A program made the position numbers and the translations under genes. The notes beneath the pieces are model-generated. The model had not been told where the DNA came from and did no database searches. It saw only the letters and a program-made list of their open reading frames with translations. 64,000 bases of DNA from Thalia democratica. Lineage: Eukaryota. Every line of letters starts with the position of its first letter. The stretch's first letter is position 1. Of the stretch, positions 22,301 to 61,381 are shown one piece after another. The DNA is taken from contig OZ241828.1 in NCBI GenBank assembly GCA_965202585.1, positions 40,796,001-40,860,000 of the forward strand. Reading direction: 5' to 3'.

Positions 22301-25300
22301 AACTAGAATTAAATATTTGTTAAAATTCATAGTATTTTCTCATATAACAGTTTTGTCAACTTTACAACACTAAATAATTTTACTCAGATTCAGTTACTTT
22401 GTGTATTGGTTTATTATAAAACAATGAATCTTCAATTACTCAAGCTAAAACGCTAAAAAAAACAACCAGTCAATTAATAGTAAAGCCAATTAAAAATGTA
22501 ATCAGTGTTTGCATAAATTTGTTGCAATTTTAAGAATTAAGTAAAAATTTAACATTTCAACTCATGTACTTTTAAAAACTAAACACAAAAAAATATAAAG
22601 CAATGTTATCAACTACTTACTTTTCAATAATGTCTTTTGCTGAGCTATTCTTTTGGACCTCACATATTTTACTCAACTCTGACGCTGATGTGTGCATATT
22701 CACTGCAGTTGGTCTTGCCTCAACAAGCTCAGTTGCCCAGCTTTTTATTTTTGAGATCAAATCGTCAGCAGTCATTTCACTAAAACTTTCATCCGACTGC
22801 AATTTGACTGCAACACTCAAGCAACCGACTATGGCTATGGCTGGTGCGCCTCTCACCTGTGAATTGTTATCTTGAAAAACTACAAAAGAAACGAACATTT
22901 TAAATTACATATAACTAATCGTATAAATATTAGAGCTTAACTAAAAAACCTGTTGTTATAAATTTCATTAGAAATAAGGTTTAAAGAAGCTTGTTAAGGA
23001 GTCTAAATTTTATAGTTTATTGAAAACTTAAGAAAAAACAATAAATATATAAAACAGAATAAAGTTTATTCAACTAAATCAATTTTTTATAGCCGGGTTG
23101 AAATAGCTTCCAAGTACTTTATTTCAAAATCCAAAAAAAAAGTACATATATTTTATGCAGCTTTTTGCCACAATCATCAGCTATGTCATTTGAAATAAAT
23201 AAATATATATATATAGTTTATTTTGAAAATTCGATTTAAAAAGAACAGTACATATGTTTCATAAAAACATTTGCTTTGTTTTTTTTTGTTTTAATGTTTA
23301 GCAAAGTGCAATTAAATTTGAACTACAGTTGATAATGAAAAAAAAAAATTAAAGACACTGTGACGTAATTATTAAATGTTGTAGAGGACAAAATTAATCT
23401 TTCTTGCAAACAAACAACTAAAACTTAAAAAACTGAAAATAAGTGACTGTAAAATTAAATACTTTAAAACTTAATAAATTTTAAGAGAATCTTTTTCATA
23501 TTCCGACAAGACGATATAAATTCACTTCTCTTGTTTAAGCAACCCTCTTTTTTCAACGCATACACAGCGGCCATTGACTCTTTTAAGCACAGCCTAACAA
23601 ACAGGGTTATTACCATCTGCTATAGGCTGTGTTCTTTTTATAACCTCCCAGGTTAATTTAAAATCAATGTTTTAGCGCTTTAGGTCACAAACGTACGTTG
23701 AAAGCTCAGTCTCATTTTCATATAGAACCTTTAATAGATTTTTTATGGTTAGCATACCGGAATCTGAACTGAGTTGAGCAAAACCGATGCAGAACTTTTT
23801 CTTAAGGTCAGAGTTAACTGTTGCCCTGTAAATAATGTCTTCCGAACGGCAATTACCCCTTTTCAAATTATATTTGCAGTCACCAGCGCAATTACATTGA
23901 TTCTGGATTAGATTACTTTTGTTTAATGTTTTTTGGTTATGTGACTTAATTAATCTCTCCAAACTAACCGTAAATGGATTATCTTTGTTTAAAATGCATT
24001 TTTACTAGATTTATAAATTCTCTGCACAGCCTATAGCAGATGATAACAACCCTGTTTATAGGCTGTGCTCTAAGAGTCAACGGCCGCTGTGTATGCGTTG
24101 AAAAAAGAGGGTTGCTTAAACAAGAGGAGTGAATTTATATCGTCTCGTCGGAATATTAAAAAGTTTCTCTTAAAATTTATTAAGTTTCAAAGTATTTAAT
24201 TTTACAGTCACTTATTTGTGTTTTTGTAAATTTTAGTTGTTTGTTTAGAAATCAGATTAATTTTTCCACTGAAAATTTGTCCTCTACAACATTTAATAAT
24301 TACGTCCTAGTGTCTTTTGTTTTGTTTTTTGTATAACCTTCGTATTAATGTTCTTTAATGTTTTAAATGCTTAATTTAATGAAATACTTAAAACTTATAA
24401 AATTACTCTTAAAAACAGACTGTTTATTTTATCTATTTAGTTTGTGTTCAAAACATGTTTTTTAAGTTTATTTTTGCAAATAGATTTACTTTAAAATAAT
24501 TTACAACTACAGATTTGTTTGTGAGAAAAAAGTTTAAGATCTCTACTTCGTAGGAGAACAAACATATTTTTATTGTCTCAAAAATTCATTAAAAAACTAA
24601 GTTTTGCTCAAAGAGCTTGTCAATGCACCTAACAAATAACTCTTATTTAAGTAGAACTTAAAAGCCCCTTTATAAAATTATTAAAATAAATCTAATTTAG
24701 TAGAAAAGAATGGAGACACATTTTTTTTTTAATTCACATACTTTTTTACTACATAGCTGTTTATCATTAACAATTAGTGCCTTATGCATTAAGTACGTAA
24801 AAAATTCAAAATACTTGCTTATTAAACTAAACATTTTCTTAGTCCATAATTTTTTATATAATTTTCGCATGGTTTTTCTCTATATCAAGTAGGAGATAAC
24901 ATATTTTAGTAAAAACGCTTAACAGAAAATAACCAGCATTTTCATCAAACATTGTTCATAAATATTTTTTCTGCAAAACTTTATAACACCAGGCCTTTTA
25001 AATATTTGGTTAATTTTTCTAGAAGTTTGATGTATGAAAATATCATCAACGGACCGCAGGTATTCAAAACAGTTGTATAAATATAAACAAAAATAATAGT
25101 TTAATTAAAAATATGTAATAATAAATCTATAAACCTTGTTAATTTAATTAGTTAAGATCCTAATTGTAAATTTTTGTCACAAAACTCTTTTTTTATTTTT
25201 CCTAGTTGAAAAGTACATTGCGAACCGCATACTCTTACTTTGACCCACGGGCTGCCATTTGCTGGCTCCTCTTTTTAAGAACAAATGATATTTTTAACTT

Positions 25301-27670: not shown

Positions 27671-30079
27671 TTATAGTTTAAGTTGAAAGATTGGGTCATC
27701 TACATTTCCTTCAGCAACCAAAGTTTCTTTCCGGTCATTTATATGTCTAATTGTGTTGTCGAAATGCATCTTAATCATTTCATTTTCGTTTTCATCTGAA
27801 ATTTCAGGAAGCTCTTCGCGAATTTTCTCAATAAGTTGACCAATGATATCATATGTGATCGTGTCACAACCATGCTCCACAAAATAAAGGTACTTGTTAA
27901 GAATTTCAACAAACAGTTGGAGTTGCATTGCTGATTCCATGCATTGATTTGCTGTTTTCACGGCTTTTTTCAAGCACTCTGCAACTCTTTTTCCGTCTCT
28001 CATTTCCTCTCCACCAGTTTCTTGTGTTTTTCCTGACCAAAAAAGATGAGCAACGTGAGCAACTGCACGACACTGATCAGGTTTCTTTAGCAGCCTGGAT
28101 GCAGCATGAGCACATTGAGTGCGCAGTGGGGCATGATTCTCTTCACTGAAGCATGTACACTTTTCTACAGTGCTAACAAAAAGCAACACAGCTGCTAACT
28201 GCGCTCTACTGTCATTAATGTCTTCTTCATAAATGGAAAAAGCTTGTGACATAAATTCATATGCTATAGCTTCGTGATTGTTAAAGCCAAGATGTGAAAC
28301 TGTTAGAGCTCCTTGCAAAAATAAGCGGAATGGTAGATCTGCTTGATCCAAATGCTGGCATAAACTGTTGATTATAGATCGACAAGTTTCAAATAGCTTC
28401 TTACACTTCTTTTGCCAGTTTTCATTTTCATCTTTACTCTCTTTGTATCTAGAAGCTAGCTTATATAGAGCAAATACAACAGCTGGCAAAGTTATGACCA
28501 TTCTCTTACTTCCGCCTTTTTCGAAGTGAGATATAGCCTTTTTCAGAATAAAGTAATGCTCGTCAGGACTACTGGAGAACAACAAATGAACTAACCTACC
28601 CACTAAACTTTGCTCTTCAGCAAATGTTTCTTCGTCAAACTCTCCATTTGGTTGGTCAGCTTGATCTTGTATCAAAACTGCAACCAACAACATTAAAGCA
28701 TCTGTAAGTTCTGGAGTATCAATGACAGTTTTATTTTCTAAAATATTACTTACTACATTTGTAGCCATCTTTTGACGAGCGTTATAATCAAAGTGATCAA
28801 ACAAAGGCCCATAGTTTTCAAGTTTCAAAACAGTAAGAATGTTGTTATAAACGTCTATAGGCATTTGAAGCAAATTTGACATCTCTCTGCACAAAACAGT
28901 CCCACTATTTACAGTATCTGTACCCCTTTTACCAAAAACTTCAAGAGTTGCACCTAATACCTTATCAACATAATCAATCCTATCTGGATAGCATTTGAAA
29001 GCCAGGTTAATAACAGCAGCTTGCATAGACACTATATCTTCTAACTTCATTGATGGTCGTGCAGAAATAATGTTTGAGACTTGCTTATTAAAAATGTCAA
29101 AAAGTTTTATATCATCTGGAATGCCATTTGAATGGTCCCTTTGAACAAAAAGAGTAAGACGTTCAACCATAGCAATTATAGTATTTTTCACATTTACGTT
29201 TGGATGGAGATTAGCACATGCTTGAAGAAAGCTATCCAGAGTTTGAAGATGAAATTCATCTGGAAAAACTTGAATTATACATTCCATCAAATACTCCTGA
29301 GCAATTGCATCGTTGCACTTAACAACTTGTTCAAGAACTCTTGGCAATACAATTTTTTTGTAGTTGTTGACATCAACACCTTCAAGCTGACTCAACCTAA
29401 CAAGATTAGTACCAACTAAAATCCTTAGCTCTTGTCTTTCTTTTTCACGCTTTTCTCTATCCTTACTGTGGCCTAAATGCTGCATTCTTACCCAAAGCTT
29501 GTTCATTTCAGAAAAGTTTTGGAGTATGAATTCAATAGAATTGTTAACATCTTGCTTCATAGATTCTTTTTCATCTTCATCTGCTTCTGGGTCAATGTCA
29601 GGAAGAACATTTTTTGTGCACTGAAGTAAATAGTTACGCAAAAATAAACCTCTTAAAGGATGCTGAACTCCTCTACACATTTCAACTAGATCTTCAAGAA
29701 TAACTTTACAGGATTTTGACTTGACATTTATGTATACAACACCCATTGTTACAAGCAAATACAGTCTTGGAATAATATTTCCAGCATACTGTACAACTTG
29801 GTACAAGTCTGTTTCAAATTGATTTTTTTTAACTTCTTCTATCAGGTAGTTTTGTAAATGTCTGAGTTCATCACAGATACTCATATATAGCTCATAATAG
29901 TTCTTAGGAGTAAGGTTTGATGTTCTTAATTCTTTAATCATGTCTGATGCATGTTTCAGTCCTTCCAAAACCTTGTTTTTGTCAAGATCTCTCTTCATTT
30001 GAAAACTTTCCATTTTCACATGCTGTACAGCCTCATCAAGCAATCTTTCTTGCTCTTCACTGTTCATTTGTCCACTCAT
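27671..30079 (-). CDS. VPS35: Vacuolar protein sorting-associated protein 35 (retromer core), intronless, 802 aa
   Basis: Full-length ORF with ELRTS-like N-terminus, [88 protein letters not shown]. Confidence 0.97.
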
Positions 30080-44560: not shown

Positions 44561-44881
44561 ATGGAAACAAGATTTCTATTATTGTACTTACTGCTTACAT
44601 TAACTTCTACATTTGCAATGGATTCATACCAGAGGGGTGACAAAGTAGAAGTTTTTGTCAACAAAGTTGGTCCATATTTTAATCCTCATGAAACTTATCA
44701 TTACTATTCACTTCCTGTGTGCAGACCTGACAAAATTCAACATAAATCGTTAACATTAGGAGAAGTTTTAGATGGAGATAGGATGGCTTACTCTATGTAT
44801 GAAATAAACTTTTTGAAAGATGTAGAAAACAAATTGCTTTGTAAAGTACATTTAGAAGAGAAAGAACTTCAACAACTCAAG
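44561..44881 (+). CDS. TM9SF1: TM9SF1 exon 1
   Basis: METRFLLL...KELQQLK; donor GTAAAA. Confidence 0.93.
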
Positions 44882-47800
44882 GTAAAATTAGAATTGTTTA
44901 AATTTTTGTATAATTTTTTGGGGAATTTTGATTTTTGTAAAATTTTTTCATTCTGCAATAAAGGTTGAGAACACTTTATAATTTATTATAAAAGTCAAAT
45001 TTCAACTAAATTAAATGTTAATTGTATCATTTAGATACTTTATTATAGTTAACAAAATGAAGTTTGTTTTAAATTTTCAGTTTTACCAGTTTTTAAATTT
45101 TTCTTATACTAAATACATCTAGCATTGATTTAAATGAGTTAAATTTCTACAAAATATATAAAAAACTTGGGAACAGGTCAAATATGCACAAAAAGACACT
45201 TTTGCACAAACACAATGTTGCACAAAGGGACATTTTTGCACTAAGGGCACTTTTGCACAAAGACACTTTTGCATGATATGTCACTTTTGCACTAGAATTA
45301 AAAAATATAAATAAAATACAATGATAAATAAAAAAATAAAAGTAAAATAATAAAAATTTACTCACTAAGGGTGAGGGTTAGGTTGGGGGTAACATCGATA
45401 TTAAAAATAGAAAACAAATTAAATTAATAAAAAAAGAAGATTAATTGATAAATTTTCAATCTGTGCAAAAGTGTCTTCGTGCAAAAATGACTCCTTGTGC
45501 AAAAGTTTCTTTGTACAAAAATGTCCCTTTGTGCACATTTGACACCTACCCAAAAAAATCTGCCTAGTTTGCAACGACTTAGGCTTTTTTTTTGAAACAG
45601 CTGTAAGTTGTTACAAATAGTTTTTAAGGCCATATAAGTTTAAAATATACTTACAACTTAGTTACATATAAATTCTCCTGTAAAATTAGAGGGCAATGCC
45701 ATTTAGTCTAACTTTTTGAAAAGTTTACAATATTATATATATTTGTTTCCTAATTTTTTCTAAACACAATCTCTCAACGAATAAAATAAATTAAAAGTTT
45801 AGAAATAATATGGAGTTTTTAAGTATATTGCTGATTATAAACTGCTAAAAGAAATATAATATTTACTAATTAGCACTTTTGCTGTTTTAGTTTGTACTAA
45901 AAAACTAACCTGTTAAAAACTATAACTTAGCAATATTTAAAATTCTTTAAATTAGTTATGCTGTAATAAGTAGGGGTAACTAGAGTAAACACCTTTAAAC
46001 TGAAATCAACTTTAAAAAACAAAATTGACTCCAATTTAGCTTGAGTTGATGTGCTTTCAATTTTAAGATTAAAAAGTTTCAATTCAATTTTATAGTTAAG
46101 ATTTTTTTTTAATTACAATATAATTTATTTTTATAAAAACATTTTAATCTTCATATAGTAGTATAAAGTTTAAAAAATTGTTATAAATTTGCTATGAATA
46201 TAGTGCTATCTTGAAAAATTATTAATAAGCAAGAATTTTAATTATATGAAATAAGTAAACCTAATTTAGAGAAGAACAATTTTATAAAGCTGATGAAAAT
46301 AGCAACGAGTGATGTGCAGTTTAATTTCAACAATACAATTTACAGTCAGATAGACGGCGTAGCCATGGGGTCACCTTTGGGTCCTACTCTAGCGAATATT
46401 TTTATTGGATATTTAGAATCCAAAATTGCTGACGACTTGTCTTCACAAGTTGTCTACATAAGATACGTGGACGATTGTTTGGTCATATCCAAAACAGAAA
46501 GTGAAAATGAAGATATTTTTCAAAAATTAAACTCTTTACATAAAAAGATTTCTTTTACTAAAGAAGTAGAAGAGAACAATCAGCTGCCATTTCTGGATAT
46601 ATTAATAATAAAAGATAAAACAAGCTTCTTAACGAATGTTTATAGAAAAACAACTTTCACTGGGCAATACTTACACTACCAATCGTTTTGTAGCAAGAAA
46701 CGAAAAGTAAATCTAATCAAAACGCTGTACCATAGAGCATACAGAATCTGTTCGAAAGAATTACTTCATTCAGAGGTTGAGAGAATAAAAGAAATATTAA
46801 TAAAAAATGGGTACCCACCAGATTTGATTAAGAAGGTGATAAAATCACACCACAATAACATAAATCAACCTAGACTATTTGGACCGGAGAAGTTCCCAGC
46901 AATATTAAAATTACCTTATATTGGAGAAAAATCACGAGTATTTGAGAGCAAACTAAAAGACTTAACAAAAACATCTTACAATCAAGTGCTTCCAAGAGTT
47001 ATATTTCTTTCAAAATCTTTATTAAAAGTGCAGTTGAAGGACCCGATACCAGACCAAGACAAAAGTTGTGTAGTATACAAGTTTAATTGCTCTTGCGAAA
47101 AGAGCTATATTGGGCAGACCTCTAGGCACTTAAAAACCAGGATAAAAGAACATCTACCTGCTTGTGTATTGAAATTCATCGAACAAGAACCTGAAATAAA
47201 GACAATAGCAACAAAAAACGCAGCAAAAAGATCTTCAGTTGCAGAACATCTAATAAATAATAGAGATTGTGCTAGGAAATATGACATATCCAGATTTAGA
47301 ATAATCCATCATTGCAATAGTGTGTTTGATCTCGTGAAGTTGGAGGCTATCTCTATATTTTTGGAGAAACCAGAGCTGTGTAAACAGAAGGAATTTTATT
47401 ATAAAGTGTCTTTATTTAGTTAAATTATCTATTTTTTATCCGTTAGTAGTATTTGAGTTTAATTATTTATTACTTTACACTGATTATTTATTGTGCTTAT
47501 TACTTTGTTAGTTTTAACTTTTTGTGTTTTTGTTTGAAAACTTATTCACAGTTTTAGAATTGTTCTACTGTTAAGTTCTGACGAAAAGTAGTGTAATACG
47601 TATAAACTATCACAGAAAACTTGAGAGAGTGTTTTATTTATTTGTTTTTGCATTAAATATGAATTAGCTGATAATGTTTGAAGTATTAATAAGCAAGAAA
47701 TTAGATAAAAACCAAAACTTTTAAGAAACCTGAATTCTGATTTGTTTTTTTTACATATATTATTTAATTGAAGGCTCTTTTGTCTGCTTAAACCATAAGT

Positions 47801-50800
47801 TATACTCAATTTACTTAAGTATGTTAATCTTGATTGTTTGAATTGCGTTTGAAAGTATATTTAAATTTGTCAAGTAGTTTCAAGCCTTAGTAAAATATGT
47901 TCTAGTTGTAAATGAGAATTATTTAGCAAATTATAATTTTTTTAAGAAAAAAAAGCTCAACAAACTTAAAATTCATGAATAATAACTTAAAGTTTAAACA
48001 ACTTAGTTTAGCTGTCTTACTCCAACTGGCATGAAAACTTTTTGTCAAATAAAGTTGGTCCTATCATTAAACATATTTCACAAAAAATACTTTTTTTTAA
48101 ATTTAGTCTTATTTTTTCATAATTACATAAGCTACTTGTTACACTTTACCACTTGTTAAAATTCAGAGTAACTTTTGAAATATAAGCAATCAAAGTTAGA
48201 AGGATCAATAAATTTTTATGGGAGGCGGAAACTATAAGGATAAAAGTATACTATTTCACTAAAAATATATCTTCTCCATCAGTATTTTAGCAGTTGTCTT
48301 CGAACTGTTTCAGAGTAATATTTTATAAATTTCAAACAACTTGTAGGAAACAAGTTTTTAACTATGCAAAAAATAGACAAAAAAATGTTTGTTTTTTAAA
48401 CTGTGGTCATAAATTTTCTCAAGGCTTTTATTCAAAAATCCGCCTCCTACAAGTTGTTTGTAATATTGTAAACTACGTTTTCTGAAAATTTAAATTAAAT
48501 TTCTTTAAAGATGAAGGAGGATATAGATTTTTGGTAAAATTTTCAAAATTCCAAAAAAGTTGACCTTGAAAATTTTTGATTCCATTTGATTGTATTGGAT
48601 TTTTTTTAAACAAATATTGTTATATCTCAAAAGTTAATTGATATTTTATGTTCTATAATAACTATTGTGTAGTATATACTCTAAGCTTTGAAATAAGAAT
48701 CAATGTTAATATTTGTAAAAAAAATGTTTGATCCCCCAACTGCCCTTTAATGTTACAAATAAATTATGTTATAACTTAAAACAAACTTAATATTCGTAAA
48801 AATGAATTTATACATACTAAAAATTTAAGGATGCAGTTGAAGAGTTGTATTATTCAGAGCTTGTTGTAGATGAGCTTCCTGTCAGAAACTTCATTGGTAG
48901 ATTAGAAGAAAGCTCGTTTCTTACTGTGCCTCATATTCACAAGCTGTTTCTTTATAACCATTTAACGTTCCACATCACATACAACAGAAATAAAGTTTGT
49001 ATTTTTAATTAAGTTTTGAAAAAAATTACCAAAAAAGCTACCACTTAACTTACTTTTATATTTAATTGTATTTAAAATTTGAGTTTTTTGTATATAACTA
49101 GCTTTTTCCAACTTTTTAGTAATTTTTTTTATATTGTTGTTCGAATATTTAAGAAATTTGTTTAAATAAAGTATTTAAGATTGAATTCTTTTTAAAAATG
49201 TTGCATTTCAACAATTTGCTAAACTGTTTTATATTCTTATAGATTTGTTAAACGTTTTTTTAAAATTAAATTTCACATAATTAAATATGCAAGATCTAAC
49301 TTGAATTTTAGATATCTTAACAGAACATTTTCACAAGCAAGTTTCTAAATGAAAATTTTAAAGTGTTATTTGATAGCATGTTGTGTAAGTTTTTTAAAAT
49401 CATAAAAACATGCCTTGAATTTTCGTCAATCTGAATGTGTAATTATTATACAACATTATTTTATGTGTCGAATTAAAAGTTGTTTATAATTAGTTTAATC
49501 CTTTCCATCACTTAATCAAAAAACATCTAACTCAAATTTTTTTTATAAACTATAAAGTAAAGATTTTGTATATGATGCAATTATCGTATTTGTTTTTAAA
49601 ACAAACAAAACTAAGAACGTTGGAAATCGTTTAAAAAGAAAGTTCGTTTTGTATAGGCTTATAAATTAATAGCAAACTTATTTGTATATTAATTTTCCCT
49701 TATCTTCCAATTCTTCTAAAATCTTACATGAAGTAAGTATTACACTACATTTTCATTAGTCTGTAATTTATCAATGTATAAAGAATTACTATTTTATTAA
49801 AAAAAATTCAGATTATATCAGTAAACACCACAACTGGAATGTCTAATTCTTTTTCATTGGATAGAGAACCACCATTTGAAATTGAATACACATATAGTGT
49901 TGAATGGAAACCTACTGACGTTTCCCCTAAAAAACGCCTTTCTTTATTGAAAGATTACAGGTTAGATTGTATAACTAAAATAAGGTTTAGAGTTTATAAA
50001 AAAGTTAACAATTTTTGAAAATTTTATTTATATATACAATAAAATATTTAAAAAAAAAGTAAAATAAAACAACTGTATAAGCTAAATATTGATATTTATC
50101 TAACTAAAATCTGATTAAAAAAACTTTTTCATAAAACATTTCAATACTGTAAAAAATAAGATATTTTTAAATATTAAAATATGTTACCCAAAATATGAAT
50201 TTAACAAATTTAGTTTTTATATTTACATTTTTCATTATGATAAAGTATTAATAAATGGAGATATTTTACTTTCTATAGATTATAAGTTAATATAAAATTT
50301 CAATGTTTTGAGTGTAGAATATGAAAGTTGTTTGTTTTTATAAAATGAAAAAAAGCTTTTACAATGAAGATTAAAATAGAGACTGTATTGAAGAAAAACA
50401 TTTTATGTCCATATTAAAAGTTTTATATTTTTTGTTTATTTTATTCTTTGACAGCCTTTTTTAAACTATAATTTTTTTTTTAAACAAGAAATAAAAGCCA
50501 TTTCTTTATTTTTTATTATATATTATTCGAAACTGATCTGAAACAATGAAATTTTGTGATAAGATTTAACATGAATAAAATACTATTTTTTTGGCATTAT
50601 AATTTGATCATCTCTGAGGAATTTATTAAACTATCTTACTTGAACTCAAAAGCTTCTTTGAGTAATGAAATATGGTATAAAAAGCAACTGTGAGCTTGTT
50701 TAAAAAATCTGCCAAACAATATCAAATTGTAAAAAAGTGCTTTACCCTTTCTATGGCCTTTAAAATATATTATCAGAATTGTAACTACTTAGGGGTCTCA

Positions 50801-53800
50801 TGGAAGTTTTAAGTTTTTGACTAAGATTGGTTTTTGATGACTTAAGCAATTTTATTTACTTTAAATTGTGTAATTTGCAATTTTTTCCTTATATTGGTTT
50901 TTTATTTAATTAATATATACTTATTTTGATATCAACTTGCATAATTTTTCAACTTAGCTAGACTATTATCAACTTAAAACAACTTTATTATGTTGTCACC
51001 GTTCATAAAATTCGATAAATATACTAATTTATTTTTAAATTTAAACAGTTTCTTTCCTCGTACATTAGAAATCCACTGGTTGTCTATAATCAATTCTGTG
51101 ATTCTAATCTCCTTACTAATGGCTTTTATAGTTGTCATACTGACTAAAGTCCTGAGAAGTGACTTCTCTAGGTATAACAAGTAAGTCTGTTATGTATGTT
51201 AGTTTTGAAATGGTTTTTTAAATTAATTAGCTCGCAGCTAAATATGTAGTCTCATAATAAAGTGTATATTTGTATATAAGTTTAGTGTGCTTTTCACTTA
51301 AGTTAACTTACTCAATATTATAACGAAACATTTTTGGTTTAAAATAAATATTTCAAACAGAATAGATGATGAAGAAGATTTGAGGGATGATGACAACGGC
51401 TGGAAAATCATTCATACTGATGTTTTCAGATTTCCCAAGTACAAATCTCTTTTCTGTAGTGTTATAGGAGTTGGTAGTCAGTTGCTGTCTATTGGTTCAG
51501 GTTAGATAGGTGTTTTTTAATAAAAACAAGTCAAAAACTATAATAGTTTAGTTTATAAAATACAATCAGTACTTAGTCGATAGTTTTTATATATTGTTAT
51601 ATTTAAGATAATACATGTAACTCTATTCATTTGACATTTACAAATTACATAAATGTAAAGTTATTGATCTCATAGTTTTTAATTATTTTAATATACTGAT
51701 AAAACGAAGTATAAATGGAAGGGCTAAAGGAAACATTAGACTCTGTTACATAAGTAATTTAACAGTAAGTTTAAAAAAAGAATATATCGAAATACATAAC
51801 AGCTTAATTTTTCATGTGTTAGATTACATGCTCAGATGCGTTCGTTTTTATTACAACGTCACACGCGCATTTCACGATCATTCACACGGTTATTATAAAC
51901 ACGAAAACTGCTTTTGAAATTTTATAGTGTCAAGAAAATTAAAAATGCTTGTTGTATTATAAATATTTCCTTCGGTACGAACAAAAACTTTGATATTTAA
52001 AAACGAACTAACTTACTTTTTCTTCATGTTAACGTTATTTTAATATATTACTAGTTATGCTTTTCTGGGGATTGAAGTATATTTTTACAAGTAAAAAGAA
52101 CTGAACTTAAAATATCTATGAGGTTGATAATAGTATATGTTATGGAATTTTGATTTTTTGTATATGATTTAAAAAAGTTAAACTTTGATAGAATAATAAA
52201 TTTAACCTTTTTAAGATAAATTGAAAGGTATATACAATAAAAGTTTTAAGTTTTTTAATAGCTTTTGTTTCAAACTAGTAAATACAGATTGAAAAAAATA
52301 TACCTTATAAATATTTGAATATTTACCTTGTAAAGCAATAGTTTGATAAGTTTTAACTTAAGTGCTTAGATCAAAAATTAATATACTTATATTAAACATG
52401 TTGTTGTATCTATAAGTGTCAATATTGTTTAATTTCAGCCTATTAGTAAAAAAATGTTGCATCAATTATACCAGTCACTTTTGAATTTTAGTTTTTAATG
52501 ACGAAAATTAAAAAAGAAACATAGTAGTGCAGTTTTCTTTTATTTACCTTTTTTAACATTTTTTTTTGATAAGGGTACAGTTAAAGATATTACCAAATTT
52601 ATATATTTTATCTGAATTAAAAACAAATTTTCTTAGTGTTTGACATCTTGATTTGATTTAATATAAAATAAAATTTACTTTTTTAAAGCCTTTATAACGT
52701 TTTTAATATCAAGAAAGAAACTTTTTAAAGATTATTTCAATACTAAAGATTCGTTTATTTTTTGTATTTATAAAATAACTTACAAAATTAAAAAATCAGG
52801 AATAATAATAATGGCACTGATGGGCTTCTTCAAGACGACCCGCCATGGTTCGATGAACACGGCTGCCATTCTCCTTTACGCTCTTACGTCATACATCGCC
52901 GGTCACGTGAGCTCGTCCATGTACCGAAAGCTTCAGGGCGACAAGTGGGTCAAAAACATCGTTCTCACTGCTTCCCTGTTCACAGGTTTTTTTTTTTTCA
53001 TTTATCACCTACGATGTGTTGACTGTAAAAAATAGCTCGTTTCACAGACTAAAGAGCTTTTTAATTAAATAATAATAATTATTATAACACTAATAAAAAG
53101 TGCGAACATCAATAAAAAAAGTTTACAATTTTATTTATATTTGATTGATAAGGTCGGATTTTTCCCTGCTGATAATTAGAACACTTAATTCGCACTTTTG
53201 TTATTATTATTTAAATATGTCACTTCAATTCACACAAACACAGCGCCCTGCTTCATCGTGTGGTCTTGCGTCAACTCTGTGCACTGGTTCTACGGCAGCA
53301 CCCAGGCCCTCCCCTTCTCCACCGTCCTCCTCCTCATGCTCGTCTCCACCCTCGTCGGCTTCCCGCTCACCGTCCTCGGCGGCATCATGGGCAAGAACAC
53401 CTCGCACGAGTTCGACGCCCCCTGCCGCACCAAGAACATCTGCAGGGAAATCCCCAGGCAGCCGTGGTACAGAAGCATGTTCTGCCACATGGTGTTCGGC
53501 GGGTTTCTACCGTTCAGGTTTTATTTTGATATTAACTTTTGTTGTTATTGCATTTTATGTTGACATAAAAAATAAAAAGTTATACAGTAGGGATTATACA
53601 CTTAAATTAGTAGTAAAAAAGACACTTAATAAAAATCCTATTTAATAAATGTTATCAATTCCTTTTGGGAAGATATATTATTTTACAGATTTACTAGATT
53701 CTATTTCGTTAAGCTTCTAATTCTATATTTATTGATATTTGTAAAAAGCCTAGTTAATAAGTTAAAGTATACTTATTTATGGATTTGAATAATGAATATG

Positions 53801-56518
53801 TTCATAAGCTGTCCAACATTCTTAATTTTTTTTAAATTAATATCAATTTTGATATTTTGTTTACATATTTATTTTAATAATTTATACATAAAACTTTTCC
53901 TATATCTATCCAATAATTGTTTTGATAAATAAATATTATTAAATATTTTATGAAGTTGTTTAAATTGTAAATATATAATTTTTTATCTTTGGTTTATAAA
54001 TTACTTTTAAATAAAATAAAAACTGTAAAAATTTATGATATTGAAGAAAAAAAGTAAACCTTACAAAAGTATACAGTATCAAGAGATAAGTTTGTGGGTT
54101 ACTATATTGTTATTTTTAAGCAAAACTTAATCATTATTTTAGTTTGAACTTTCATAGCTTATAATCGTTGATAAATTTTGAAATATCAAGTTATGAACTT
54201 AATTATTTAATATTTTTTAACAATAAAAAAGTATACGTAATTAAAAAATTATACACCTTTTGAAATTAGCTGTAAGTAAATATTGTATACAAAATTAGAC
54301 TACAGGTAGTACAGACTAAAATTTTAATTAAATAAGATTTAAGTTAATATCACTGTTTCAAAATAATAAATAATTATAGCTAAAGGTTTTTAACAACTTT
54401 AAATTTGTAACAACTTGTTGTAATAATAATCTTTATGTTTGTGAAACAGCGCCATATCCGTGGAGCTGTACTACATTTTTGCAACGGTGTGGGGAAGGGA
54501 AATATACACGCTGTACGGAGTGTTGTTGCTCGTGTTTGTACTTGAAATAGTTGTTAGCGCGTGTGTTGCTGTTGCGCTAACCTACTTTCAACTGTCAAGT
54601 GAAGACTACAGGTTTGTATTTTACATAATTTATTTCGTACCAAATTATTATTTTCTGTAGAGTTTTAAATTTAATCTATGTTATCTGACAATGTTTGTTT
54701 GTTTATTTATATTTTTTTACACTAATTTCGTTTTTTTTATTCATATTTCTTATTCAAATTACTATTTATTTGAATCCAGTAAATAAAAAAAGATAGAAAT
54801 AGATTTTCTTTTACTTTAGATTGTTTAGTTTTGTTAAGGTTTCTAGTAAATAATCTCAGGTTAGTTTAGGTTTTTCATCATACAAAGTTTGTTTAATTAG
54901 TTTTTGTTAATTTTGTAATATTTAGTCGACTTGTGCAACAAGTTACCCACCTTGTAGCTAAAATTACACAAATAGTAGATTTCATCATTAATTTTTATAG
55001 AAATATAAAATTACTCATATGGATCTCAAATGAAAGTTTATAGGAGTAGCAACCAGTAATTCATAGCTCAAATAAAAATAATCAGTTATAAAAAATAAAG
55101 TAAACTAAAACTAAAAACACATATTAAAACACCTATTACAGTTGTTACACCTATCAAATTAAGTTTGAAGTTAGATATTTCAAAATATCCTACCTTTCGA
55201 TTTTTTACACTTGAGCTATGTTACGCTTCCTAGACTCTTTGCAATTTTAGTCACAATTGTATGTATTGCATGAATGTGAGTGTACAACAACATGTAATTT
55301 AAGTGAGGCGTTAACAAAACATTGCACCGGAAATGAAATACTTTAAATTTAATTTGATTTTTATCTTTAAAATTGTATAAAATTTTTTTTTTAATTTTTC
55401 AACTAAAATTTAGTAGAGAAAGCTCAGTGGCTAAAGATTTTGACCCACTAAAATGTATATTACACATTGGAATGTACGTTTGATAACATTTCTTATAACA
55501 TTTGTAGTTGTTTTTTCAAATTTAAATACTATAACCAAAAATTTATTATAACAGATGGTGGTGGAGGTCCATATTCAGTGCTGGTTCCTCGGCTTTCTTT
55601 GTTTTTATGTAAGTTTTTAAGCTTTCTTGTAAAACTTTTTATTACATTAAATAATGCGTAATTTTCTATATCATTTTCAAATTACAACTATTTTTTAGTA
55701 TCCTGTCAAATTTTATTATACATTTACAACATTTATGTACAACTCTAAGATTTTTAGATAATGATATTTAGAAGCAATTAAATTACTTGGTAACATTTGA
55801 AGCATTTTAATTAAAGCCGATGTTTTACAGAGTGTTAAAATTTTTTACTTTTATTCTTTTAAAGCTTATAAAATTGATAAAAATTTAAAACATTTTGCAA
55901 CAAAACAAAAAAATAACTACGTTTTATTTATGATAGACGTTTAATAAAACAATAAAAAAAATTAAATTTTTGTAACTGAACGCAGTTTATGCTATTACTT
56001 TTTTGAACAGCATTACTAAAGTTGAAATGGTTTCAGAAGTTAAATGGATCTAAAACATTTAACTAAAAAGTATTTTAAGCCTTTCTTAATTTGTGCTGGA
56101 ATCTTTTTTTTTGAGTTAGGTAAAACTTTAGCATCAAATTTTCTTTTTACAGTAGATGATTTTTTCTAAAATAATTTCGTACAAAAGTTAAAGGTTTTTC
56201 GTACAAATTTAATATAAGTGTATGTTTATTAAATCTTTTTGTCGGTTATTGTAAAATAAAAACCATGCAAAAGTTTTATTGTCGAATAAGAAAAAATGAT
56301 ACTTTAGTACTTATTTTTGATATTTTACTTGTTTTTCCAGGTATTGTTGTTTCTTTTACGTGAAAAGGTCAAACATGTCAGGCCCGATCCAAACAGTTGA
56401 GTTTTTCGGATATTCCATTTTGACCTGCTTTGCGTTCTTTCTCAGCCTAGGAACTGTTTCGTTTTTTGCTAGTCTCAAGTTTATTAGGTATATTTATGTG
56501 AACTTAAAAACAGACTAA
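44561..56518 (+). CDS. TM9SF1: Transmembrane 9 superfamily member 1, 10 coding exons, 586 aa
   Basis: Exons 44561-44881, 48830-48994, 49812-49960, 51049-51180, 51361-51500, 52800-52985, 53244-53517, 54450-54611, 55555-55608, 56341-56518 total 1761 nt, GT-AG, phases consistent; signal peptide, [87 protein letters not shown]. Confidence 0.95.
45169..45551. mobile_element. Foldback/Mutator-like MITE, copy D (TM9SF1 intron 1)
   Basis: GGGAACAGGTCAAATATGCAC / GTGCACATTTGACACCTACCC; one internal GGGTGAGGGTTAGG module; degenerate TSD AAAAAACTT / AAAAAAATC. Confidence 0.8.
46242..47423 (+). mobile_element. 5'-truncated Penelope/Poseidon-type PLE: RT C-terminal half plus GIY-YIG endonuclease
   Basis: Open frame from 46242 (ATG 46293): [71 protein letters not shown]; RT N-terminal motifs absent. 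Confidence 0.92.
48830..48994 (+). CDS. TM9SF1: TM9SF1 exon 2
   Basis: [27 protein letters not shown]...[12 protein letters not shown]. Confidence 0.9.
49812..49960 (+). CDS. TM9SF1: TM9SF1 exon 3
   Basis: IISVNTT...[27 protein letters not shown]. Confidence 0.88.
51049..51180 (+). CDS. TM9SF1: TM9SF1 exon 4
   Basis: [43 protein letters not shown]. Confidence 0.92.
51361..51500 (+). CDS. TM9SF1: TM9SF1 exon 5
   Basis: [39 protein letters not shown]. Confidence 0.92.
52800..52985 (+). CDS. TM9SF1: TM9SF1 exon 6
   Basis: [61 protein letters not shown]. Confidence 0.92.
53244..53517 (+). CDS. TM9SF1: TM9SF1 exon 7
   Basis: [27 protein letters not shown]...[20 protein letters not shown]...GGFLPF. 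Confidence 0.93.
54450..54611 (+). CDS. TM9SF1: TM9SF1 exon 8
   Basis: [29 protein letters not shown]...[11 protein letters not shown]. Confidence 0.93.
55555..55608 (+). CDS. TM9SF1: TM9SF1 exon 9 (54 nt)
   Basis: [17 protein letters not shown]; ATAACAG acceptor, GTAAGT donor. Confidence 0.88.
56341..56518 (+). CDS. TM9SF1: TM9SF1 exon 10 (last)
   Basis: [25 protein letters not shown]...[15 protein letters not shown]. Confidence 0.93.
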
Positions 56519-57611
56519 ACGCAGTTGCAAGTTTTTAAGCCTTATCAAGTTTGGTGAAAGATTTATTAGAAGGTTGATGTTTACTGGTTCAGCTTACTTT
56601 TTGTATGTTCGTTTTTGTTTTATTTTAAAACAACTAACTTAATTATATATTTACGCATTAAGTTTATTTTAAAACAATTTACACCCATATCCTGTTTTTC
56701 AATAAGATGTGACTCATGTTTGAGAAACATTACTTGTTTTTGACAAGTTAATAAAACTTTAACAGTGCTTATATTTAATGTAGGTGATTTTTTTGTTTTA
56801 ATTCTTATTGCTTTAAAGAAATTTTCAAATTTTTAATATACAGATATGAAATATTTTGTTTTAGTTTTGGTGCAATTGATTTTAAAAGGTAACTACATAA
56901 TAACTTAATTTAAAAACAATACTTTTTTACAATTATAAATGTTTAAGCTTAGTAAATCTCTGTAATGTTTTAAACTTAATTTAAATATTTATTACAAGTT
57001 TTATTTAAGAATATCAGTTAAGTTTATTTTGCATTGTATTTTATTTTACGTTACACAAACATTTATTTATCAATTTTATACGAGTAGTTTCTTGTATAAC
57101 CTACTCATAAAATGTTTATTTTGTAAATGAGTAATAGTAATGTTTTTTTATCAAACTAAAACAGCTTTTAATAAGTTTTAAGATTTTTTTTGCTGCCAAT
57201 ATTTTTATTTATTTATCTGATATTATAGTTTTTTGTTTTGTTTCAATAATAAACTTATTATTAATATAACAAAATTTGTTACTTTTTCTAATTTTTGTTA
57301 TAAGATGTTTACTAGTTATTCTGATTCGTTTACAGAAGTTAAACAAGTCATGAATATGTTTTATGTAATGTACTAAACTAATAATGAAATTTACTTTGTG
57401 TTAGTTGAAAACTCATAAAATGAGTGTATTTTTTGAATACTATTTAACTATTTTTAATAGAACTACTTGCCCACAATAGCACATAAACAGTTGAAAATTA
57501 TTTGTTATTAACTAAAAATATAACAGTTTTTAACTGAGAAGTTAAAAAGATTATATAATGCTTAAATAGTTACTGAACACTAAAATATTTGTTTTAAACA
57601 AAAGTTTTAAG

Positions 57612-57807
57612 TAGTGATGTACCGGACCCGGACTTTTTTTTCAAATTAGAATCGGCCGGAACCGGATCCGGACTTTTTTTTCAAACTAGAGTCCGGCCGG
57701 AACCGGATCCGGACTTTTTTTTCAAATTAGAATCCGGCCGGATCCGGATATTAGACAAAAATGGCAATATCCGGCCGGACCCGGATAGTGAGTCCGGTAC
57801 ATCACTA
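57612..57807. mobile_element. 196-bp hAT(Ac)-like MITE with CCGG-rich 40-41-bp internal tandem repeats
   Basis: Perfect 15-bp TIR TAGTGATGTACCGGA / TCCGGTACATCACTA; flanks GTTTTAAG / GTTTAAG; three units CCGGACTTTTTTTTCAAA(T/C)TAGA...CCGGCCGGA. Confidence 0.85.
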
Positions 57808-59401
57808 GTTTAAGTAACATCTGTTTAAACAATTTAAGGTTAAAAGTTTTAATACTTCAATAGTCAAGTTATAACAAATATATAGCTACATATATTCATT
57901 TAAAAATTGTAGCTAAAATATCAACTAGAAAATAACTTCATTTTAACATTGTATTTTTTTTAGAACTTGTAAATAAATACAATATCAGAAACTGTAGGTT
58001 TTCATATAAAGAAAAATTATTATCTGTAAATGGCCATTAGCTGTAAAAACAATAACGCAATTACTTTTCAATCTAAATTAACAGGAGCTTTATAATTAGG
58101 TAAAACATTTTGTAAGTCAACCATAACTACACTTAAAAATTATAAAAATCAAGTGTGAATTTTTTTGAACTATTTTTGTTTACATAAAATATTTACGATT
58201 TGCTACTTGATAGATTTTCAAGTCAAACTGTTTACTCAGCTTTAAATTAATAAATTTCGTTTAAGAGAATATATCTGTTAAGTGAATCATAAAACATACG
58301 TATATTTCAGCTTAAAACCTGATATTAACTTTTGATTATATTTCAAATTATATGCTTCTTTAAATAAACAATTTTTCTAAGTTTAAACAACGCTATAACC
58401 TTATTTATCAATAAAAAACTGAAATAAATGTTGTCAAATGGAAATTCTTTTACTAAAATTTTACCCGTCAACAATCAGTATGTTGAAAACTCGTAGTAAT
58501 TTTATTCATAGCGTTAACTTTTCACAGAAAGCTACCGTATAGTTTTTTTACTAACAATTGATATAAACAAAAATGATTAAATTGTGTTTATAATTTTTGT
58601 CAAATAACTAATTTGAAGATAGTCAAGTCTTAATATTTTGGAAATTACATTAAATATTAATATACTCTTTTATCGTTTCCTTTCAAATTGTTTTTGTCGC
58701 TATTTTGTTTAAGAGAATAGCTAAATAAAGTCATAAAAATGACTTTTTCTATTATCATAATCTAAAAAACTATTTTTAAGGAAATTCATACACCATTAAA
58801 AATATTTATATTATCATAAATGTTTAATAATTGAGTTATACGCAAGTTTTTTACATAGATTTTTAAAGCTAGTCGTACTTACGGACAAAAAATTTCTTCT
58901 AAAAAATTTATTTCTTTAAGGTTCAATAAAACGATCAATTTTATCAAATATATAAAAACAGGTCTACTTTTTACAATTATTTCAAACCTAAACATTTATG
59001 AATAGTACGCTATATTGTGAACATTAAAATATTTTTGTTGATGTTCCAAAAACTTTAAGTACATTATGGGCGTCAATAATGTAACACTATATGAGGTACG
59101 CACAAAATCTGGAAAACTAAATTTAATTATAAAACTCCTGATATCTGTAAAAAGTTTTAAATGAACTGAAACATGATCTTATTAGATTATTACAAGTATA
59201 GGACACTCCTTAAAAAGGTATGCTTTATAACAAAATAGAAAAGACCATATTTTTACAGATTTTTTTTTCATATGATTAACCAATCTAACAATCATTAGAC
59301 GTAAACAACTTAAAAAAAAGTTTTATCTAACATATAATAAACTAACCAATAATTTTTTTATTATTATAGTATTATCCAAGAATTTTGTATTAAACCTAAA
59401 C

Positions 59402-59740: not shown

Positions 59741-60532
59741 GCCTAAACGAACAGTTTTGGTTTTGTATGGTATAAACTTACCAGGGACGTAGCCAGCTCG
59801 TAAAAGCTACGAAACTGCAAAAAAAAAACATGCATCAGGGATCAATAGTTCATAGCTGGAACAAAGCAATATAAACGTTGAGCCACTATCTTTGCTATTA
59901 TATTCTAGAATACAAATTAATTTAAAATTACCTCAAATCTATTCCTTCCTGCACAGTATTTTTTGTATTGGATTTCTTTTTCTTATTCGGAATAAACTGT
60001 TTTCGAAGTTATATTCAAAAATTACAAAATAAATCTGCAATACTTTTATGTTGCTTATAACTCTACAACTAGTTTCGATTAAAGATAATCATTTTCAAGT
60101 AGATATTATAATTATGACTTAATATTCTAGAAATATATTCTAGAAAGATTAAAAATATTATTTAAAATAGTGATGTCCAGTTGTGTCGCGTGGTCTTTTG
60201 TTAGGGGGTGCTGCAGATTGACATTGTCAAATTAAAAAAATCCTCTAGTCTTCAAAAATTTGTATTAAATCATAAAGGTAATGTAAAGAAATAGCAACTT
60301 TTTTAGAAAAAAATTGAGCATATTTTTTTAATTTATTAATATATAAAACAATTAAAAACAAATATTAAAAAAAAACCTATCTTATACCTTTGTATATCAT
60401 CACCCTTTCCTAACAACTACGGCTACTTTTATTTTTATTTATGTACATGTAAGTTTCTGTATTTGCACAGTAATAAATTTACTAACTTAGTTTTATGAAT
60501 TGTCTAGCTAGTAATAAAAAAACAAAAAAAAA

Positions 60533-60877
60533 TTAAAACATGCAAGTAACTTCAAAAAAACGAGGTTGCCCCTGCTCGAGTTGCTCCTGATCAAGTTTAC
60601 CCTGCTCGAGTTTTCGCTGCTCGAGTTGTCCCTGCTCGAGTTGTTTCTGCTCGAGTTGTTTCTGCTCGAGTTTTTTCTTGCTCGGGTTTCCCTGTTCGAG
60701 TTTCCCTTGATTGAGTTGCTCCTGCTCGATTTTTTCCTGTTCGAGTTGTACCTGCTCGAGTTGCTTCTGCTCGAGTTTTCCATGCTCGATTAGTTCCTGC
60801 TCGAGTTTTTCCAGCTCGAGTTGCTCTTGCTCTAGTATTTCCTGCTCGAGTTTTTCCTGTCCGAGTTGCCTCTGCAT
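60533..60877 (-). CDS. Putative (LEQxx)n pentapeptide-repeat ORF or exon
   Basis: 114-aa open frame through the whole array with synonymous CTC/CTA/CTT, GAG/GAA, CAG/CAA variation; low complexity makes open frames easy to obtain. Confidence 0.3.
   Translation of the reverse strand: MQRQLGQEKLEQEILEQEQLELEKLEQELIEHGKLEQKQLEQVQLEQEKIEQEQLNQGKLEQGNPSKKKLEQKQLEQKQLEQGQLEQRKLEQGKLDQEQLEQGQPRFFEVTCMF
60566..60870. repeat. 15-bp minisatellite, about 20 units (CTGCTCGAGTTnnnn)
   Basis: CTGCTCGAG recurs with a 15-bp period. Confidence 0.95.
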
Positions 60878-61381
60878 GAGTTCAACTTGTCTAATTGTTC
60901 TCGCGTTGTTGTAAATTTTAAAAAACAGTCATCATTTAATTCACAGAATTCAACTTTTCAACATTTTTTGTATTGAAAACTTGTAAACATTTAAGATGTA
61001 GCTGACACAGATTGAGCTTGCAGCTCCAATTTGACGAACATTTTGAACATCCAATATCAAAACTTGAAAAAAAATAATTTAGCAGGGAATTAACGACGTT
61101 CATACACACATTTGGCTGCATTTTTTGTACAACTTTATGATAACATAACTTTCTTATTTTTTAAGATAATATAAAAAGTTTTATTTCATTTTAAAGCACA
61201 ACTCCTTAACTTTAAAATTCCTTAACTTTGACGTAGTTTGGGGTTGTACAGCAGAAGCAGGGACTCATTTAAAGCAGCGTGTTTAAAGGCTTTAACTCTA
61301 AAATCAAAAAAATAATTAGCATAATTTTTCATTTTTAGGTGTAGCTACAGCTCCAGCGTTCCACCCCACGCGACGCCCCTG

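Follow-up and report, generated by a model that had tools for sequence, protein, structure and literature searches.

A codon-delimited GC spike in exons 6–8 of TM9SF1 in the AT-rich genome of Thalia democratica

What lifts the GC content at third codon positions (GC3) from 25% to 93% and lowers it again within a single gene, while the introns between the exons concerned remain AT-rich? The question is raised by TM9SF1 of the tunicate Thalia democratica, a gene on the + strand of a stretch of 64,000 nucleotides (assembly GCA_965202585.1, contig OZ241828.1, positions 40,796,001 to 40,860,000), hereafter called the window, which as a whole has a GC content of 25.7%. A reading of this DNA made from its sequence alone (the sequence-only reading) had drawn attention to the positions 52800–54611, corresponding to the span of exons 6–8, and had listed conversion by a donor, protection from mutation and a fossil recombination hotspot as candidate causes. 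Exon 7, where the spike culminates, is real, native and expressed. Moreover, the pattern to which it belongs recurs across the genome, has its boundaries at the level of codons and consists of a synonymous shift.

The GC-rich state peaks in exon 7 (53244..53517), where 85 of the 91 codons end in G or C (93%) and the third positions comprise C62 G23 A3 T3. Exon 6 (52800..52985; GC3 41/62, 66%) forms the 5' shoulder of the peak, and exon 8 (54450..54611; 29/54, 54%) lies on its 3' side. Upstream, GC3 amounts to 27/107 (25%) in exon 1 (44561..44881), 20/55 (36%) in exon 2 (48830..48994), 11/49 (22%) in exon 3 (49812..49960), 18/44 (41%) in exon 4 (51049..51180) and 15/47 (32%) in exon 5 (51361..51500); downstream, it is 9/18 (50%) in exon 9 (55555..55608) and 27/59 (46%) in exon 10 (56341..56518), which is followed after the stop codon by an AT-rich 3' untranslated region (UTR). 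The values that had been counted by hand for exons 1 and 4–8 were reproduced exactly in the rebuilt gene, and the 56 consecutive G/C-ending codons described for exon 7 were located at 53279–53446, while 10,000 shuffles of the third positions of the gene gave no run longer than 19. Across the ten exons GC3 is strongly heterogeneous (chi-square 128, p = 3e-23), and along the coding sequence the GC-rich state occupies a single hump between codons ~303 and ~490, which rises abruptly where exon 5 is joined to exon 6 and tapers off within exon 8, GC3 there declining from ~0.7 to ~0.4. The observed-to-expected ratio (o/e) of CpG follows the same division, being 0.27 in exons 1–5 and 0.95 in exons 6–8, with 0.84 in exon 7. 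The introns of the gene have a GC content of 18.6–26.1%: intron 6 (52986..53243, 258 bp), which separates two GC-rich exons and had been called very AT-rich, measures 24.8% and intron 7 (53518..54449, 932 bp) 18.6%. An overlapping RNA element as the cause was rejected, since a search of exon 7 against Rfam returned no match and its predicted RNA fold is ordinary (z = -0.56).

The gene model, built from open reading frames and canonical AG/GT splice sites, comprises 10 exons and 586 codons between the start codon at 44561 and the stop codon at 56516–56518. Pfam EMP70 (PF02990) matched exon by exon along the gene, with 85.9 bits for exon 7 against a cut-off of 27, and the closest named relatives, from Stylophora, Mytilus, Branchiostoma and JGI records, are annotated as "transmembrane 9 superfamily member 1". 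Three other EMP70 genes of the genome share 30–40% identity with it in exon 7. Judged by the EMP70 match and the named relatives, the gene is TM9SF1 rather than TM9SF2, 3 or 4. It is intact, with an uninterrupted frame of 586 codons and canonical GT..AG introns, and it is expressed, as spliced metatranscriptome contigs cover exons 4–10 and reach position 56700. The open frame of exon 1 is found with 100% identity in marine metagenome contigs (P0208). Intron 1, which is depleted of CpG (o/e 0.48), contains at 46242–47420 (+) an open frame of 393 codons that encodes a reverse-transcriptase YVDD motif and, at its C-terminal end, a GIY-YIG-like motif, and that looks like a Penelope-like retroelement.

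Given so sharp a change of composition, the spike could have been brought in from elsewhere: exons 6–8 might have been replaced by sequence from a foreign source, a paralogue or a cDNA, or the assembly might be chimeric or contaminated. The very different composition compared with the remaining gene is what would speak for such an origin, for which there is no positive evidence. A 2,786-nt contig from a public run of organism A (X1) covers 52797–55582, that is exon 6, intron 6, exon 7, intron 7, exon 8 and most of intron 8, with 0 differences, and in a run assigned by its label to a second organism (B) exon 7 and both of its junctions are covered with 1 difference. Contigs of two marine metatranscriptome runs are spliced at 51180/51361, 51500/52800 (skipping 1299 nt), 52985/53244 (skipping 258 nt), 53517/54450 and 55608/56341; all five joints, corresponding to junctions 4–5, 5–6, 6–7, 7–8 and 9–10, are GT..AG and agree exactly with the gene model, so that exon 7 must be transcribed and spliced in wild animals. 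No second copy of exon 7 was found in the 802-Mb genome, where the next best peptide match is another TM9SF gene with 34% identity, and no duplicate or echo of exons 6–8 is present inside the window. Both exon 7 junctions are common to the relatives L013, L016 and L018 from metagenomes and public assemblies, and when relatives are ranked by per-exon identity, exon 7 gives the same order as its neighbours, leaving no discordance of the kind expected from a chimeric gene. In addition, dozens of unrelated exons show the same pattern. A chimeric assembly, named among the outcomes that would overturn the sequence-only reading, is ruled out by the independent contigs and the spliced RNA. Within the reach of these data, contamination is excluded too, and so is a donor origin of exons 6–8, whether foreign, paralogous or from a cDNA, which leaves donor conversion, one of the causes first proposed, extremely improbable.

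Where exactly the GC-rich state begins and ends was determined by likelihood placement of GC change-points, which, for the majority of the GC-rich exon borders examined, coincide to within a few nucleotides with the acceptor AG or the donor GT. In a boundary profile averaged over 15 GC-rich exons from 10 genes, the outermost 30 exon nucleotides have a GC content of 0.52–0.56, while the adjoining introns have 0.197 at +7 to +30 and 0.227 at -4 to -25 and stay at 0.20–0.22 over 7–60 nt, so that a distance of 7 nt from the splice site suffices for GC to drop from ~0.55 to 0.20; no bin up to 400 nt away exceeds 0.27. Comparable edges are seen where no intron intervenes. In the intronless genes L046, L048 and L080 the 60 nt upstream of the ATG have a GC content of 0.15–0.25, and the first 10 codons already reach a GC3 of 0.6. 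In L081, GC3 stays at 0.8–1.0 right to the stop codon and GC is 0.27 in the next 60 nt, and for L081, L080, L048 and the last exon of TM9SF paralogue A the 3' flank has a GC content of 0.13–0.27 within 60 nt of the stop. L046 leaves the GC-rich state ~26 codons ahead of its stop codon, in an unconserved tail. A 3' UTR shares both its exon and its mature mRNA with the coding sequence that precedes it, so that the unit of the GC-rich state is the coding sequence and not the exon as a piece of DNA or RNA. Within the coding sequence it is third positions that differ: GC at second positions (GC2) is 0.37 in both GC3 classes, so the shift is synonymous, and GC at first positions, with Leu and Arg left aside, is 0.53 versus 0.48, which is not significant. 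Accordingly, in the GC3-rich class Arg shifts from AGA to AGG and Leu from TTA to CTG or CTC.

TM9SF1 is not alone in this behaviour. The genome-wide statements made here rest on ~60 exons, taken from Ras, TM9SF and actin-type genes and from the window. Among 25 Ras-family exons located by a Pfam search of the genome, GC3 ranges from 0.17 to 0.92, with 12 exons below 0.40 and 11 at 0.55 or above, while at distances beyond 300 nt the DNA around high- and low-GC3 exons alike has a GC content of 24%; a regional isochore effect was rejected on account of these identical flanks. Two of the three TM9SF paralogues rise from 5' exons with AT-rich third positions to a GC3 of 0.76–0.79 in their last exons, whereas the third remains AT-rich at third positions throughout (GC3 0.23–0.37 over the homologous region), and a tie of the spike to a particular protein region was therefore rejected. 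Two intronless actin-related genes have a GC3 of 0.74 and 0.93. The exons of true actins reach 0.5–0.7 and are nearly devoid of G-ending codons, with C39:G1 at fourfold degenerate sites. Within the window, the MRI1 exon that had been put forward as a companion case (~19918–20165, -) holds a moderate GC3 island, with 0.6–0.8 per 10 codons over most of its length and canonical AG/GT borders; an MRI1 open frame upstream of it (22620–22904) has a GC3 of 0.37. VPS35 (27674–30079, -) is an uninterrupted single open reading frame of 802 codons with a GC3 of 0.29 and a CpG o/e of 0.37. Exon length or lack of introns was rejected as the determinant, since four other intronless genes have a GC3 of 0.74–0.93. 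The 28–36 kb region around VPS35 shows a CpG o/e of ~0.3, and these surroundings may be a methylated domain.

Several side observations belong to the same survey. The intronless Ras-like paralogues L046 and L047 lie ~4 kb apart on opposite strands, in divergent orientation (G000 C5:32.330–32.336 Mb), and have a GC3 of 0.83 and 0.48, respectively; a related copy with an in-frame stop (L050) has 0.50. In the window, GC-rich islands at 57598–57810 (+) and at 60518–60928 (both strands) coincide with internally repetitive open frames, one with a PDPDFFFKLES repeat and the other with an LEQ-rich repeat, which are not obviously exons of a conserved gene.

The GC-rich state also differs in its preference for C or G. 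As had been stated from the sequence, exon 7 is strongly C-ending, with eight CTC and no CTG, six ACC and no ACG, and six GGC to one GGG. Neighbouring exons lean opposite ways, fourfold degenerate codons giving C:G = 34:8 in exon 7 and 4:11 in exon 8 (p = 3e-4). For Leu, three GC-rich TM9SF genes use CTC and CTG at 19:4 as opposed to 24:75 in soluble proteins (p = 3e-7). The TM9SF genes in question, namely TM9SF1 with its exons 6–8 and the paralogues at C1:46.04 Mb and C1:46.42 Mb of G000, favour CTC and GTC, while the soluble proteins favour CTG and GTG. Elsewhere in the genome, the GC3-rich exons of soluble proteins are about symmetric (C:G 253:295), and the GC3-richest genes found, the intronless actin-related gene with 0.93 and members of the Ras family, use G as much as C. 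The excess of C over G is thus real for exon 7 and the TM9SF genes and does not extend to the other GC3-rich exons, which use both about equally. A preferred Leu codon that depends on the class of gene is not predicted by a strand-symmetric process acting on DNA, and such leanings to C or G in individual exons may point to some feature of the coding mRNA, although exon 7 has neither an unusual fold nor an Rfam match.

Comparison with relatives shows in which direction exon 7 has moved. TM9SF1 orthologues in genomes of 36–54% GC display a mild rise of GC3 from 5' to 3', from 0.23–0.27 to 0.43–0.57 in L076 and L078 and from 0.55–0.60 to 0.73–0.76 in L016 and L018, and their exon 7 has a GC3 of 0.43–0.73 in these four. 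As the values of the relatives are lower, the lineage of the window must have pushed exon 7 up, with the 5' exons staying at intron level. A relative with 84% amino-acid identity already carries a GC island, the orthologous exon 7 having a GC3 of 0.59 between flanks of 0.27 and 0.36; at the distance of L013, synonymous sites are saturated. Exon 1 is as conserved as exon 7 (58–71% identity to distant animals) and has a GC3 of 25%, for which reason amino-acid conservation was rejected as the determinant. The exon structure has itself changed among these animals: in the more distant relatives L015, L016 and L018 the region of exons 8–10 (54450–56518) is a single exon, so two introns were either gained in the window lineage or lost in the others, an extra intron splits exon 7 in L076, and exons 1 and 2 are fused in L079.

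At closer range, the introns are collinear with those of organism B and ~98% identical, with ~97 single-base differences and ~13 small indels in 5.8 kb. The haplotype comparison took in four samples. Among synonymous differences to the metatranscriptome haplotypes in exons 6–8 and 10, the window carries A/T where the others have G/C in 11 cases as against 3 of the reverse, compared with 1:3 in exons 4–5 (p = 0.08 for the contrast), and with organism B as arbiter the window has the odd A/T allele at 3 of 4 sites. These differences fit an AT-biased mutation opposed by a fixation bias favouring G/C, and they do not separate selection from conversion. Beside the synonymous differences, two non-synonymous A>G differences at 53387 and 53406 of exon 7 (Met>Val and His>Arg), present in both metatranscriptome samples, run toward G as well.

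The explanation that we favour, tentatively and with somewhat less than even confidence, is that exons 6–8 represent a local peak of a genome-wide, codon-level and selection-like bias toward G/C that works against AT mutation pressure. Introns, UTRs and many exons would rest at an AT-biased mutational equilibrium of ~20–25% GC, while in some coding segments synonymous positions would be driven to G/C with second codon positions untouched. G/C-ending synonymous codons would enjoy a fixation advantage at the level of translation or of the coding mRNA rather than through a regional DNA process, and the strength of this bias would vary within one gene from ~0.3 in exons 1–5 to ~4 in exon 7 (in units of 4Nes). 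Because the edges fall on splice sites and on start and stop codons and because GC2 is untouched, the force appears to act on codons and not on regions; the cause itself would be selection-like. A number of points weigh against this explanation. To our knowledge, no form of synonymous selection has been described that toggles from one exon of an mRNA to the next. Selection for accuracy at conserved positions would not explain the spike, as exon 1 is no less conserved than exon 7 while its third positions are AT-rich. The preferred codons are inconsistent, being CTG in soluble proteins and CTC in TM9SF genes, and G-ending in exon 8 and C-ending in exon 7. The highly expressed actins are merely intermediate in GC3 and avoid G-ending codons. 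Finally, the samples are small, consisting of 15 exon boundaries, 3 start codons and 4 stop codons.

A different account would attribute the spike to GC-biased gene conversion (gBGC) confined to exons, in which a recombination or non-crossover hotspot of 2–4 kb is centred on exon 7 and the introns serve as heteroduplex barriers, as has been proposed for rice. This is unlikely, though it has several points in its favour: in genome coordinates GC3 forms a single hump, with 0.32 and 0.41 ~2 kb upstream followed by 0.66, 0.93, 0.54, 0.50 and 0.46, the GC3-rich exons of soluble proteins have gained C and G about equally (253:295), the alleles specific to the window in GC-rich exons are mostly A/T where two to three other samples have G/C, and the literature offers a precedent both for introns as barriers and for reduced recombination inside them (PMC4684703). 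However, gBGC is expected to enrich G/C at all classes of sites, including introns, and intron GC is flat over the 7–60 nt next to the 15 GC-rich exons (0.20–0.22) and stays at 24.8% in intron 6. The sequence-only reading had argued from the AT-rich intron that ordinary regional gBGC does not fit, and the confinement of the spike to exons bears this out. Scattered polymorphic indels acting as a barrier would yield a gradient instead of a step within 7 nt, and the edges at start and stop codons have no intron that could act as one. With a neutral GC of ~0.2 (kappa ~4), a GC3 of 0.93 requires a B or S of ~4, and under gBGC with B ~4 we estimate that each 1% of neutral substitution should add ~2 points to intron GC, yet the introns have kept collinearity and ~98% identity with those of organism B. 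A rescue by turnover of the introns, equivalent to the fossil hotspot suggested earlier, is disfavoured by this collinearity with its ~13 small indels in 5.8 kb and by the GC island of the 84%-identity relative. Moreover, gBGC should show no preference between G and C, and the exon-specific skew of 34:8 in exon 7 and 4:11 in exon 8 is unexpected.

An exon-specific bias of mutation or repair is less probable still. Here, germline chromatin, through nucleosomes, mismatch repair guided by H3K36me3 or CpG methylation, would suppress or enhance AT-biased mutation exon by exon. It agrees with the exon CpG o/e of 0.59 in the AT-rich and 0.93 in the GC3-rich class (p = 0.03, with GpC equal), with the difference between 0.27 and 0.95 inside TM9SF1, with the low GC3 of the intronless VPS35 in a CpG-poor region and with the reported absence of several base-excision repair genes in thaliaceans (PMC13746493). 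Conversely, the GC3-rich exons of paralogue A and L080 lie in CpG-depleted surroundings (o/e 0.37 and 0.16), and for the flanks the difference in CpG o/e between the classes (0.80 versus 0.68) is not significant. Regional CpG depletion by methylation was accordingly rejected as the switch: while suggestive in the window, it is contradicted by paralogue A and L080 and not significant in the flanks of the Ras exons. Chromatin marks, which have roughly nucleosome-scale resolution, are blind to start and stop codons. The protection of exons from AT-biased mutation, considered among the original candidates, may contribute, but on its own it cannot bring GC3 to 93%, above the 59–73% of the relatives. 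Classical translational selection, by which highly expressed genes match abundant tRNAs, would account for the limitation to coding sequence and synonymous sites and for the preference of exon 7 for C-ending codons like that of the actin genes, and pelagic tunicate populations are probably very large. However, it should act on the whole mRNA, whereas GC3 spans 22–93% within TM9SF1, so that whole-gene translational selection is insufficient, as had been supposed. The actins stop at 0.5–0.7 with C39:G1 while intronless low-profile genes reach 0.83–0.93, the GC3-richest genes found use G as much as C, and the preferred Leu codon changes with the class of gene (19:4 versus 24:75). We consider this classical form highly improbable.

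In a full-text literature search, no description of an exon-by-exon GC3 mosaic was found for tunicates or other animals; the suspicion of an exon-level compositional process without earlier description in animals thus stands, and from the present data the process can be described more precisely as codon-delimited. The nearest parallel comes from rice and Arabidopsis, where GC changes in steps structured by introns, termed the "intron barrier effect" (Ressayre et al., 2015; PMC4684703). There as here, GC and GC3 change in steps at introns without smooth gradients; in the plants, genes with few or no introns differ, and gBGC together with an intron barrier has been discussed. In contrast, rice gains GC in the external coding parts, before the first and after the last intron, with internal exons at a common level (PMC4684703). 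TM9SF1, an animal gene, has its peak in an internal exon, the seventh of ten, together with AT-rich 5' exons such as exon 1 at 25%, and a far larger amplitude (25% to 93% within 2 kb, between introns of 20% GC).

In the isochores of mammals and birds and in the honeybee, GC3 heterogeneity is driven by gBGC, and the GC of introns and flanks follows GC3. Those systems share with Thalia a large variation of GC3 among genes against AT-biased mutation and, genome-wide, an enrichment of both C and G; they differ in that flank GC is here 0.24 for GC3-rich and GC3-poor exons alike, with no rise 7–60 nt away. Translational selection as known from Drosophila and Caenorhabditis affects whole genes, scales with expression and favours one set of preferred codons. 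It resembles the present case in being restricted to synonymous positions of coding sequence and in stopping at its ends, matching the equal GC2 and the edges at splice sites, ATG and stop codon, but here adjacent exons differ in state, the flavour varies by exon and actins are not extreme. For tunicates, a comparison of 38 genomes lists T. democratica with 790.7 Mb and a low, rounded (broad) GC3 peak, and finds the GC3 distribution of thaliaceans to be unlike that of the other tunicate classes (BMC Genomics 2026; PMC13746493). According to the same study, thaliaceans have lost the base-excision repair genes smug1, MUTYH and MPG, gBGC is mentioned as a possible cause, and the cause of the GC variation is left open. 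Its analysis proceeds per gene and per species and does not include exon mosaics, splice-sharp edges or AT-rich introns beside GC3-saturated exons.

Whether GC3 reflects selection, gBGC or mutation bias has long been debated, and the matter is difficult to decide as long as the composition of introns and flanks follows that of the exons, as it does in most genomes. In T. democratica, exon and intron GC are uncoupled, as neighbouring exons differ by 70 points of GC3 while introns remain at ~20% GC, which makes this genome a natural test case, with regional DNA processes and codon-level forces predicting opposites. As a practical consequence, gene finders, codon-usage statistics, estimates of synonymous divergence (dS) and screens for horizontal gene transfer that assume one composition per gene will misbehave here. 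More broadly, and as a possibility that we regard as rather doubtful, the genomes of salp-type tunicates may harbour a codon-delimited drive toward G/C that is switched on or off for coding segments of a few hundred nucleotides, has an exon-specific C or G flavour and opposes an extreme AT pressure arising maybe from lost base-excision repair; behind it would stand either synonymous selection of a new kind, acting for instance on local features of the coding mRNA, or a repair bias informed by translation or splicing.

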